This document shows, piece by piece, positions 53,301 to 57,929 of a DNA stretch of 64,000 nt (position 1 is the first letter of the stretch; each line of letters opens with the position of its first letter). The position numbers and the translations under genes were made by a program. Source of the DNA: Octopus sinensis (Eukaryota); contig NC_043004.1 of NCBI RefSeq assembly GCF_006345805.1, positions 29,140,001-29,204,000 on the forward strand, read 5' to 3'. Under the pieces are notes generated by a model that made no database searches, was not told the origin of the DNA, and was given only the letters and a program-made list of their open reading frames with translations.

Positions 53301-56300
53301 ATCGGTACTGCATCAGGGTCATTCCCATTACTATATCGTTTTCTCTTGTAAGACATGTATAAATGCACATTTATAAATGCATCAGTATTATAGTATATGC
53401 ATTTATATTAAAGGCATGTTTACAAAAAAAAAAAACTTTTGTTGTAGCATAAAAATCAATGTAAATTTTCATGTCTCACAAATTAAATTTATTGAATAGA
53501 GTCCATTAGTAAAATTACCACTTATTACGTCTTATTGTTTTAATTGCAATTACAATTAAGTTGTCTTTCTTTTTCTACGCTTAGATTGAAATTTATCACA
53601 CAGATGAGCCTCTTGTTGACAATTACACATTAATAGACATCGCTTATATTTACATGTGGAAAAGGGTAAGTGATTTTTCAGTGTTGTATTTATCTAGCAA
53701 GTCCCTTGATATGAGATCGTAATATAAAGCTGAAGCAATTACAACGTGGATAGGCTACACAAAATCTGTTACATTCAGTTTCATTTATTTCTTGAGGTTT
53801 CAACATTTTCGTCGCTCTTCTATGACATGGTCACTGACATAACTCCACTACAAGCTGGTTAAATAATTCATTTAACTTAGAACAGTGGTATAAATGACCT
53901 GGTCACAGAAGTTTAATAAAAGATTTGATACTTCAAGAAATTAGCAAGAAGTGAATGCATCGAGTTTTGTATAATTTTAAATAACTAAAATGCCTCTTTC
54001 AACAAATAAGTTTATTGTATTGCATTTTTACTTTCATTCTCGATTTCTCTGAATTATACTTAATTTACTATTCCTATAACTGTTATCCATTTATTCACAA
54101 ATTATTTAATTTTTTTTTCTATTACCAGAAAGGTCCACTTCGATTATTTTATTCAGTTTCATATGAACCAATTAAGAAACGAAAAATAGAAATGGTAACA
54201 AATTTAAATGAAGAAGTGTCTGTTCCTGAATGCTGTAAAGGCATAGATGAAACCATTCACAAATCAGTCACATTCGCTGAATTAAATCATGAAGAAGAAA
54301 ATATTCAAAACAATACTTCAGAGACAATAAATCCTCCTAAGGGAGAATCAGTATCACCTCTACCATTGTTACCTGCTTCTTCTCAATATTTACCGCAAAC
54401 GATGCCAAAAATCCCAGAAGCAAATTCTTTAGAAACTGTGCTAAATGAATCAACTAAAAGTATATTGCCGAGCATAAATGAACACACCCAGCAGGATCTA
54501 TCAGTGGAGATGCAACCAGACTCTACTAGAAACTGTGAACAGATAGTATCAGGGCATATTCCACAAGATTCTCCAAGACACATTGAACAGGATTCACTGG
54601 AACATCTTCAGCAAGATTTAGTTGAAGACATGCAAGAAGATTCACCTGAAAATGTGCCTCAGCATTCATGTGAACATGTGCAAGATCAGACACCAGAAGA
54701 CATCCAGCAAGAATCTCCTGAAACTATCCAACGCGAGACTTCTGAACACATGCAAGAAGACTCTCCTGAACAGATCCAGCATGACTCCCTGGAACAGCCT
54801 CAACAAGATTCTTCTGAACACATCCGACAAAGCTCTCCTGAACATATCCAACAAAGCTCTCCTGAACACACCCAGCAAAACTCTCCAGAACACATTCATC
54901 AAGATACTCCTGAACACATCCAAGAAAACTCTCCTGAACACACCCAAGAAAACTCTCTTGAACGCATCCAACAAGATACACCTGAACACATCCAACAAGA
55001 CACACCTGAACACATCCAACAAGACACTCCAGAACATATCCAAGAAAACGCTTCTAAACACATCCAACAAGACACTCCTGAACACATCCAACAAAGCACT
55101 CCTGAACACATCCAACAGGACACTCCTGAACACATCCAAGAAGGAACTCCTGAACACATCCAGCAAGATTCTCCTGAACCGACTCAACCAGATTTACCTG
55201 GCCATATCCAACAAAACTCACCTGAACACATCCCACAAGTCTTAACTGAAGACGTCCAACCACATTTACCTGAACACATCCAGCAAAACTCTCCTGAGCA
55301 CATTCTACGAGAAAACTCCGAGCAAGAATTATCTGAAGACATTCAGCAAGGGATAACAGAACAAACCCAGCAAGAAATACAAGAAACCATGCAACAAGGC
55401 TCTCCTGAGTCTATACAGCAAGATACACGTGACAAGGTACAGCAAGACTCACTAGAACAGTCACCCAAAGATTCCTTAGAGCACACGCAACAAGATTTAC
55501 CAGATCACATACACGAAGAAGCATCTAAACCTAACGTACAAGATTCTTCAGAACATATCCCAATAGTTTCCCCTGAACACGTCCATCAGATTCCCCATGG
55601 AACAATCCAACACAACCCACTACAATCACAAGACACACCAAAAAGCATGCAACAAAATTCACCTGATACTATTCATGAAAATTCTTTGGAGGCTGTTCAC
55701 CAAGACTCACCTGTACCAATTCAACAAGATTCACCTGCGACAATTCAGCAAAACTTGCCTGTTCCCAAACAAATTGACTCGTCTCAAGGTTTTCAGCAAT
55801 GTGTACCTGAAACTGCTCAGCAAAAGACTGTTCAGCCCATTGAATCAAAACCTTCTCAGTATATAGAACCAGCGTCACCTTATACCAAAGAAAAGATGCA
55901 ACAGGAATGTCCATTGCTCATGCAACAAAAGTCAGTACAACATATGAAGCTTTCTCCACGACAACATTTAGAACAGGATTTACCTCAACACTTCGATGAA
56001 AAATCATACCAACATTTTCAACATGAATCACCTCATAAAATACAAGAAAATTCTCAACCGGTTCAACAATTACTATGTCACAACATGCAGCAAAGATCGC
56101 CTCTAAAGGTGAAAAAAGAATCACCAAGACTTGTACAAGCAAAATCACCTCAGCATATTCAACAAATATCCTCCCATCATATGCAATTAGAGTCAGCTCA
56201 TCATTTGCAATGGGACTCTCCACAAAGCTTGCCACGAGATTTACCACAACAGCTGCAAAGAGTATCACCAAAACGTTTTGAGCAGACAACTTCTCGACAC

Positions 56301-57929: not shown

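Follow-up and report, generated by a model that had tools for sequence, protein, structure and literature searches.

Background

Long-tailed members of the PCGF (Polycomb group RING finger) family are known from Drosophila, where in both Psc and Su(z)2 more than 1,000 tail residues come after a RING finger and a RAWUL domain. Both tails are disordered and positively charged, binding to DNA and making chromatin compact (PMC8760139). The tail of Psc is also heavily phosphorylated, and phosphorylation of the disordered region of CBX2, a different Polycomb repressive complex 1 (PRC1) subunit, lowers DNA binding (PMC10821450). Here, a comparable gene is described from Octopus sinensis. It was found in a stretch of 64,000 nucleotides of contig NC_043004.1 (positions 29,140,001 to 29,204,000, forward strand; hereafter the window, on which all coordinates are based). 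By homology the gene encodes a PCGF of the BMI1/Psc type, and its last coding exon would add a tail of 1,266 residues, some 60% of which consists of copies of a single octapeptide.

Both long disordered PCGF tails and disordered regions with charge blocks are already known kinds. Oppositely charged blocks in one disordered chain occur in transcriptional regulators, and in HMGB1 an acidic tail auto-inhibits the basic DNA-binding region. To judge from the gene sequence, what is new in octopus is a tail made from one octapeptide, a sign switch at one position of the unit, and a dominant acidic half. A literature search on cephalopod or mollusc PCGF tails returned nothing relevant and no description of an octapeptide tail. 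The reading we favour, at a probability of roughly 0.6, is that the last exon of this PCGF gene carries a coding octapeptide minisatellite, and that the tail would serve PRC1 as an extended disordered region with patterned charge, its two halves working in opposition.

Gene structure and completion of the RAWUL domain

The window has the base composition of AT-rich, intron-bearing eukaryotic DNA. Upstream exons were located by tblastn against the window, using vertebrate BMI1 (an approximate query sequence) and then bivalve PCGFs. The RING-finger exons lie upstream of the window, outside it, and the following parts of the gene were placed within it:

2343..2398, + strand: PCGF exon directly after the RING finger; tblastn with BMI1 and bivalve PCGFs, GT-AG borders, match to CAI9726763.1
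4064..4111, + strand: PCGF exon; tblastn, match to CAI9726763.1
44746..44860, + strand: PCGF exon; tblastn, match to CAI9726763.1
48366..48414, + strand: small PCGF exon, placed from the sequence of CAI9726763.1
49692..49790, + strand: RAWUL exon 1; Pfam RAWUL PF16207 (E = 1.4e-20), tblastn
53585..53665, + strand: RAWUL exon 2; tblastn, Pfam RAWUL, match to CAI9726763.1
54127..54132, + strand: tandem acceptors CAG/AAAG, 4 nt apart; CAG (exon start 54129) leaves the tail in frame, AAG (exon start 54133) is the annotated one
54129..57929, + strand: last coding exon with the whole C-terminal tail, 1,266 codons plus stop in a single open frame
54129..54191, + strand: RAWUL end and conserved basic patch, 21 residues; aligns with bivalve long PCGFs and the octopus short paralogue

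Spliced to 54129, the window exons correspond exactly to residues 110-258 of the Octopus vulgaris protein CAI9726763.1 (‘complex BMI-1-like’, 276 aa), and all borders are GT-AG. Residues 57-95 of the same protein form a RING finger (zf-C3HC4_2, E = 9e-11). The first nine codons of the last exon finish the RAWUL domain. With the exon start at 54129, the RAWUL profile is covered from 1 to 65 of 65 positions with 73.9 bits (cut-off 33.5), whereas the annotated model, starting at 54133, contains a truncated domain (1-56 of 65, 60.8 bits). A profile search gave 1,713 matches, and nearly all descriptively named ones among the matches listed were BMI-1, PCGF4 or Su(z)2-like, with E values of 1e-100 to 1e-80. 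The preliminary description of this DNA had joined 53665 to 54129 and had taken the open frame as the tail of a PCGF. Homology supports the junction, and the assignment holds, as the RAWUL domain is complete only when spliced at 54129 and the exons equal part of CAI9726763.1.

The two acceptors lead to very different products. From the AAG acceptor the last exon is read in the +1 frame and meets a stop at 54187-54189 after 18 codons, and it is in this +1 frame that the public 276-aa O. vulgaris model ends. The CAG acceptor is the first AG past the pyrimidine tract. Furthermore, the remaining six acceptors of the gene are all YAG, and the AAG acceptor has an A at -3. Since the CAG acceptor comes first after the tract, the other six acceptors are of the YAG type and the RAWUL domain is complete at 54129, RING finger, RAWUL domain and tail are read as one protein of the BMI1/Psc type. 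Its predicted length is very probably 258 + 1,266 = 1,524 aa, not 276 aa.

In the O. vulgaris assembly GCA_951406725.2 the PCGF gene spans 203 kb, and a separate single-exon gene of 1,245 aa without a Pfam match begins 3 nt after the end of the 276-aa gene. This length is exactly that of the window open reading frame (ORF) from the ATG at 54192 to the stop at 57929. There is thus no net length difference between the two ORFs, which fits an unchanged repeat number. An exact sequence look-up of the 1,245-aa ORF of the window gave no identical record. In UniRef the same 276-aa sequence appears under two entries of the genus Octopus.

The octapeptide array

Tail residues 119-856 (738 aa, ~60% of the tail) form an array with a 24-nt, or 8-residue, period that runs uninterrupted through ~54483-56696. 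It holds ~90 units of the form a-[S/T]-P-b-H-[I/V/M]-Q-Q, counted by parsing the tail with a cyclic profile of eight columns that gave no weight to the two variable ones. Three parts can be distinguished:

54483..55628, + strand: acidic sub-array, consensus D-S/T-P-E-H-I-Q-Q (GAC TCT CCT GAA CAC ATC CAA CAA), net -71 over 382 aa, 21 [S/T]PE motifs
55629..56261, + strand: degenerate middle, net -3, position b mixed (H, Q, K, D, E, V, A, L)
56262..56696, + strand: mildly basic sub-array, consensus S-S-P-R-H-x-Q-Q (TCA TCT CCC AGA CAT xxx CAA CAA), net +16 over 145 aa, 12 SP[R/K] motifs

Tandem Repeats Finder detected the 24-bp period twice, at 54696-55303 (25.3 copies, 75% matches, consensus GAACACATCCAACAAGACTCTCCT) and at 56302-56576 (11.6 copies, 71% matches, consensus TACAACAATCATCTCCCAGACATA), with periods of higher order (93 and 141 bp) in the second stretch as well. 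Residue identity in the translated exon rises to 0.29 at lag 8, compared to ~0.06-0.09 at the lags next to it and 0.05-0.12 over other lags. Each 80-residue block between tail residues ~81 and ~960 significantly surpasses its shuffles at this lag (z 2.9-14), and the looser middle of the array is still periodic (z 4.8-7.3). At the DNA level, identity at lag 24 forms a continuous plateau of 0.43-0.57 that includes the middle (control lags 0.25-0.31), with peaks of 0.82 at 54880-55120 and 0.72 at 56320-56560. Because the plateau is unbroken and carries two peaks, the array is a single old one in which two cores were homogenised later. The single 8-residue register over about 700 residues that had been proposed earlier is therefore real, the signal at both lags being continuous through the middle.

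The array has the properties of an in-frame coding minisatellite. The unit length is a multiple of three, the units are arranged head to tail, and 31 consecutive units (54561-55304) follow each other without any indel. The earlier suggestion of a minisatellite-built tail agrees with the period of 24 and with the coding pattern given below. The array grew as one, and two foci later underwent separate amplification and homogenisation, in which one fixed GAA (E) at position b and the other AAA or AGA (K/R), one or two transitions away. The possibility that the 24-bp unit is a dispersed satellite was rejected for the window, as all 12 matches with at most 3 mismatches fall within the exon.

Evidence for translation

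The last exon lies in the longest stop-free stretch of the window, which comprises 1,314 codons if in-frame sequence of the preceding intron is included. The next longest has 319 codons and the median is 10. Differences from the block consensus are distributed over codon positions 1/2/3 as 53/34/85 in the acidic block (p = 9e-6), 35/19/45 in the middle (p = 0.0055) and 33/14/46 in the basic block (p = 2.4e-4), where the p-values are optimistic, since the units are related by duplication and are not independent. Second-position changes are depleted in all three blocks, and synonymous differences are in excess (fraction 0.33 vs 0.19 in the acidic core and 0.38 vs 0.22 in the basic core).

When the observed number and spectrum of changes were scattered at random over consensus units (1000 runs per block), the mean number of stops was 9.2 in the acidic block, 4.7 in the middle and 6.1 in the basic block, or ~20 in total, and the number observed is 0. 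Runs free of stops numbered 0, 9 and 3 of 1000, respectively. Behind the array, the 410 non-repeat C-terminal codons were open in 0 of 5000 shuffles, and the other two frames contain 26 stops each. Given the lack of stops where ~20 are expected, the synonymous excess and the few second-position differences, there is a strong case that the array is coding, held open and translatable in the frame of the tail.

The region of the exon (54001-58000) is also asymmetric between strands (GC skew -0.31, AT skew +0.25), owing to CAA, CAC, ACA, CCA and GAA codons. In coleoid cephalopods, A-rich codons are potential substrates for A-to-I (adenosine-to-inosine) recoding, with the exchanges K to E/R, N to D/S and I to V. 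The same exchanges are found between the genomic repeat units.

Charge pattern of the tail

Position b accounts for the change of sign along the array. It is E in 30 of the 34 complete units of the acidic block (GAA 29, GAG 1), mixed in the 13 units of the middle, and K or R in 14 of the 16 units of the basic block (AGA 9, AAA 2, AAG 2, CGA 1). From GAA to AAA and from AAA to AGA, each step is one transition. Inside the acidic block there are already one K unit (AAA, NASKHIQQ) and one R unit (AGA, DSPRHIEQ). Position a is D or E in 19 of the 34 acidic units and becomes neutral (S, T, A or other) in the basic units, and its Ser codons differ, with AGC in use among the acidic units and TCA among the basic ones. 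The preliminary description had two positions inverting their charge. This is true of position b, whereas position a only passes from acidic to neutral, with no flip of sign. The dozen or so SP[R/K] motifs mentioned there were counted as twelve.

Net charge is -71 for residues 119-500, -3 for residues 501-711 and +16 for residues 712-856. The block of distal repeats, previously called basic, is thus net positive but only mildly so, at +0.12 per residue. The whole tail contains 109 K+R and 155 D+E, giving a net charge of -46, which is divided into -84 over residues 1-640 (640 aa) and +38 over residues 641-1266 (626 aa). Per 100 aa the net charge runs -4, -20, -20, -18, -15, -6, +2, +13, +1, +8, +3, +9, +1. 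The tail had also been called charge-blocked, and the kappa check gave a divided answer. The charges are segregated over hundreds of residues (z = 6.3-6.5) and only at this scale, as kappa at the 5-residue scale is 0.189 and does not differ from that of shuffles (0.190 +/- 0.017).

Two further features of composition follow the unit. The array has 49 [S/T]P sites where shuffles have 13.2 +/- 3.1 (~3.7-fold), and the 98 histidines account for 7.7% of the tail (1.8-2.9% in bivalve tails), each octapeptide of the acidic and the basic block contributing approximately one. Histidine richness of this kind could give the tail a pH-sensitive charge or metal binding.

Non-repeat parts and predicted structure

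Distal to the array the tail continues as follows:

56697..57170, + strand: non-repetitive S/P-rich stretch, net +7, predicted local distance difference test score (pLDDT) below 50
57171..57554, + strand: long Q/H-rich predicted helix, tail residues ~1015-1142, from the AlphaFold2 single-sequence model
57555..57926, + strand: C-terminal region with a Cys cluster and the motifs PLSL (57609-57620), PLNL (57834-57845) and PLNL (57873-57884), net +6

The AlphaFold2 model was made for 1200 residues from the single sequence without an alignment and is therefore weak evidence for disorder; in it, pLDDT is below 50 for 1064 of the 1200 residues, including the entire array. The tail is thus predicted to be mostly disordered. 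Helices were modelled at model residues 949-961 and 965-1076, with pLDDT of 73-91 over the core. This Q/H helix of ~125 residues, which includes HQHQHQHCH, is the only confidently predicted structure of the tail and may be a coiled coil or another element of self-association. A PDB sequence search with the C-terminal 410 aa gave no match. The long PCGFs of bivalves end in an invariant G-x-D-L-S-T-K. We take both this motif and the PLSL/PLNL motifs of the octopus tail to resemble CtBP-binding motifs of the PxDLS type.

Comparison with Drosophila, bivalve and other chromatin proteins

The resemblance to Psc and Su(z)2 lies in the general plan. The octopus tail also follows a RING finger and a RAWUL domain, exceeds 1,000 residues (1,266 codons, ~1,245 of them past the RAWUL domain), is for the most part predicted as disordered and defies alignment by sequence. 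Like the heavily phosphorylated tail of Psc (PMC10821450) it is rich in S/T-P, and its distal half is net positive. However, the tails of Psc and Su(z)2 are positive overall (PMC8760139), whereas that of octopus has a net charge of -46 and begins with an acidic block of 500 residues, Psc being compared here by description. It also differs in being built from ~90 copies of one octapeptide. The analogy with the Psc tail drawn in the preliminary description hence applies to the distal half (residues 641-1266, +38) and fails for the tail as a whole.

Bivalves have long PCGFs (five, of 1,149-1,403 aa) in addition to short BMI1-like ones. The long forms, exemplified by the 1,272-aa ‘protein suppressor 2 of zeste-like’ of Mercenaria mercenaria and those of Ruditapes, Dreissena and Mactra, are 55-57% identical to the octopus protein in the RING/RAWUL homology region. 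They share the KGPLRL(F/Y)Y motif and the basic patch, straight after which comes a tail of ~1,000 aa that is acidic over about its first 400 residues and basic later. The first 40% of the bivalve tails has a net charge of -27 to -43 and the rest +35 to +42, compared to -77 and +31 in octopus. In Mercenaria the net charge per 100 aa is -11, -16, -8, -8, +12, +14, +6, +4, +4, +4, -1. Segregation is weaker in the bivalve tails (z = 2.5-3.8 vs 6.3). In contrast to octopus they have no 8-residue periodicity (lag-8 identity 0.06-0.09 vs 0.29), and the octopus tail, with which they are unalignable, lacks the AT-hook-like GRPRGRPPK and several conserved blocks found in them. It had been stated earlier that no PCGF was recognised with such an architecture. 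This goes too far, since all five bivalve proteins are acidic first and basic later without the repeat. Because they have the same layout, the charge architecture is not unique to octopus.

Octopus and Mercenaria also share the presence of a short BMI1-like paralogue on the same chromosome. The octopus short paralogue CAI9726771.1 (347 aa) lies on the same 118.9-Mb contig as CAI9726763.1, and the long and short BMI1-type paralogues of Mercenaria lie on one 82.4-Mb contig. This recalls Psc and Su(z)2, which are an adjacent pair in Drosophila. In a neighbour-joining tree the octopus long form groups with the bivalve long forms, with a bootstrap of only 99/200. Within the homology region, 61% of its residues agree with the octopus short paralogue and 55-57% with the bivalve long forms.

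Searches for relatives of the tail itself ended at the RAWUL domain. Aligning the five bivalve proteins to the tail with hhalign placed only 21 residues at the RAWUL end, and tblastn of the bivalve proteins against the window found the exons of the homology region and the RAWUL end and nothing deeper in the tail. A word-indexed search with RAWUL domain plus tail gave RAWUL matches only, and one with the non-repeat parts of the tail gave no match; both are weak negatives, as each also missed the existing 1,245-aa product of O. vulgaris. With 1,200 residues of the tail as query, HMMER against the whole library missed this product too and gave 292 matches. The top ones examined were rejected as homologues, being unrelated proteins with octapeptide arrays (TRTTPERI, TSDVVQQV, QPEAPGHV, QENTDEST) from amphioxus, a green alga and metagenome/assembly records. 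Pfam matches within the tail (DUF2345, Fibrinogen_BP, Cornifin, Gp5_trimer_C) concern repeat families and were taken to reflect periodicity or composition, not homology. The match to the bacterial family DUF2345 on the basic block (56400-56620, query residues 775-828) reached 35.9 bits against a gathering cut-off of 30.7 and was likewise set aside as a false positive caused by repeats or bias.

Other chromatin proteins share single features with the tail. CBX2, which serves compaction and phase separation in mammalian PRC1, is comparable as a subunit with a charge-dependent disordered region, the DNA binding of which responds to phosphorylation (PMC10821450, PMC8760139). It is a different subunit, and its region is short, strongly basic and non-repetitive. 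The SPK(K/R) repeats of sperm histones H2B and H1 are also tandem S-P-basic motifs in a chromatin protein (PMC9903204). In octopus all twelve copies read S-P-[R/K]-H/N/F, with one basic residue per eight, so that they depart from the consensus (PMC9903204) and have a far lower charge density. Compared to charge blocks of the HMGB1 kind, those of octopus extend over hundreds of residues at low charge density and derive from one repeat unit, and an interaction between them is only hypothetical.

Proposed role of the tail

The favoured reading supposes the following mechanism. The positive distal half (+38), made up of the basic repeat, the S/P-rich stretch, the helix and the C-terminus, would contact DNA or nucleosomes and would self-associate through the helix, as the C-terminal region of Drosophila Psc does. 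The acidic proximal half (-84) would compete with DNA for the basic half, or would bind histones. Finally, the ~49 proline-directed S/T-P sites of the array would allow kinases to shift the balance between the two halves.

Several points weigh against this. The tail as a whole is negative, its basic block is weak and each motif has a single basic residue, unlike the positively charged tail of Psc. A drift from acidic to basic along an octapeptide array can arise without any link to Polycomb, as seen in the unrelated amphioxus protein XP_066274303.1 of Branchiostoma lanceolatum, where acidic units (QPEAPGDA) give way to basic ones (QPGVPRHV) along an array at residues ~180-470. The bootstrap for orthology with the bivalve long forms is low, as given above, and the shared charge layout concerns two lineages and could be coincidence. 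The common descent of the repeat units makes the codon tests optimistic. Furthermore, the only public model of the gene takes the AAG acceptor, stops after 18 codons and separates the tail as a gene of its own.

The best-placed competing explanation, unlikely though it seems to us, is that the tail is translated and largely neutral filler. A minisatellite would have expanded in a tolerant disordered tail, with selection merely keeping the frame open and the peptide soluble, and the charge blocks would be by-products of which variant unit was amplified, without a specific chromatin function. The high divergence of the units (25-29%), the degenerate middle, the weakly charged basic block and the local mixing of charges, equal to that of shuffles, are all what such a history would leave behind. 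So is the similar drift in amphioxus, and no homologue of the tail was found, by searches weak enough to miss the O. vulgaris product. Neutrality fits less well with the behaviour of the charged position. No codon of the acidic unit varies as little as that for E (2, 2 and 2 differences in 31 units), and 5 of the 7 non-consensus position-b codons in the basic block stay positive. The excess of synonymous differences and the same layout in bivalves also speak against it. Since the non-repetitive tails of bivalves are acidic first and basic later as well, the comparison suggests that selection acts on the charge layout rather than on the sequence.

Extended across molluscs, the opposition of two halves leads to a more speculative proposal, which we regard as doubtful at present. 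The long Psc-type PCGFs of molluscs would share a tail that is acidic and then basic irrespective of sequence, which in octopus would have been rebuilt from one 24-bp unit via GAA to AAA to AGA and local amplification. The acidic block would be a phosphorylation-tunable competitor of the DNA-binding half. If true, the tail would be a natural modular system for studying what charge layout by itself does to the compaction of chromatin by PRC1. Apart from this proposal, the parallel layout of the bivalve tails hints that a negative tail half, which is not discussed in the Drosophila-centred literature that could be read, may be a regular feature of mollusc long PCGFs. According to work on the tail of Psc, function rests on charge and disorder and not on sequence, and a scaffold that occurs with either sign makes the octopus gene an unusually clean natural test object, the blocks of which can be swapped, shortened or inverted in sign with little other change.

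Alternatively, the array could be a multi-site platform with ~49 S/T-P phospho-acceptor sites and one His per unit, that is, a kinase-, pH- or metal-responsive scaffold whose principal function would not lie in the charge blocks. RNA polymerase II with its heptad tail, or the mammalian prion protein with its copper-binding octarepeat region, would be comparable in logic. The ~3.7-fold enrichment of [S/T]P, the retention of S/T-P and H in both blocks while the charged position changes, and the high His content relative to the bivalve tails agree with it. P and H, however, also simply belong to the ancestral unit. The bivalve tails are enriched neither in His nor in S/T-P, so that any such function would be lineage-specific, and we consider this explanation rather improbable.

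Public gene models

Both remaining alternatives concern the gene model rather than the function of the tail. That the 1,245-aa ORF is a separate gene and no part of the PCGF is how GCA_951406725.2 presents it, with the 276-aa and 1,245-aa genes adjacent and 3 nt apart. This is very unlikely. There is no intergenic space between the two, and the frame of the ORF extends upstream of its ATG to the CAG acceptor, the codons there specifying the conserved final RAWUL strand and the basic patch. Bivalve long PCGFs bear tails of ~1,000 aa right after the same motif, and in the annotated PCGF the RAWUL domain is cut short. Most likely a 4-nt error at the acceptor has split the public model, and the appearance of the tail as a nameless orphan gene is probably the result of this split.

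Least probable of all is that the gene really, or mainly, makes the 276-aa form and that the repeat is an untranslated 3' region, as the use of the AAG acceptor in the public model and the identical sequence under two Octopus entries in UniRef would have it, since 1,266 stop-free codons with a coding-type substitution pattern would then go unread, the acceptor would deviate at -3 from the YAG of all six others, and the product would lack the last RAWUL strand. A minor short isoform with a truncated RAWUL domain may nevertheless arise via the AAG acceptor.

One protein with RING finger, RAWUL domain and tail has a practical consequence. Studies of Polycomb proteins or of protein disorder in cephalopods that build on the current annotation would miss the tail of a core subunit of PRC1.

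Other features of the window

The intron between the two RAWUL exons contains the remnant of a mariner-type transposase ORF at 52409-52897 on the + strand (Pfam Transposase_1 PF01359, E = 6e-15). An open stretch of 316 codons at 37621-38571 spans an assembly gap of 100 N (37880-37979), and its part after the gap has no Pfam match and resembles the C-terminal part of ORF2 of a non-LTR (long terminal repeat) retrotransposon. A (CATG)n / 12-bp microsatellite at 57968-57999 begins 39 nt past the stop codon of the tail. The 2-kb stretch at 40001-42000 has a G+C content of only 17.8%.

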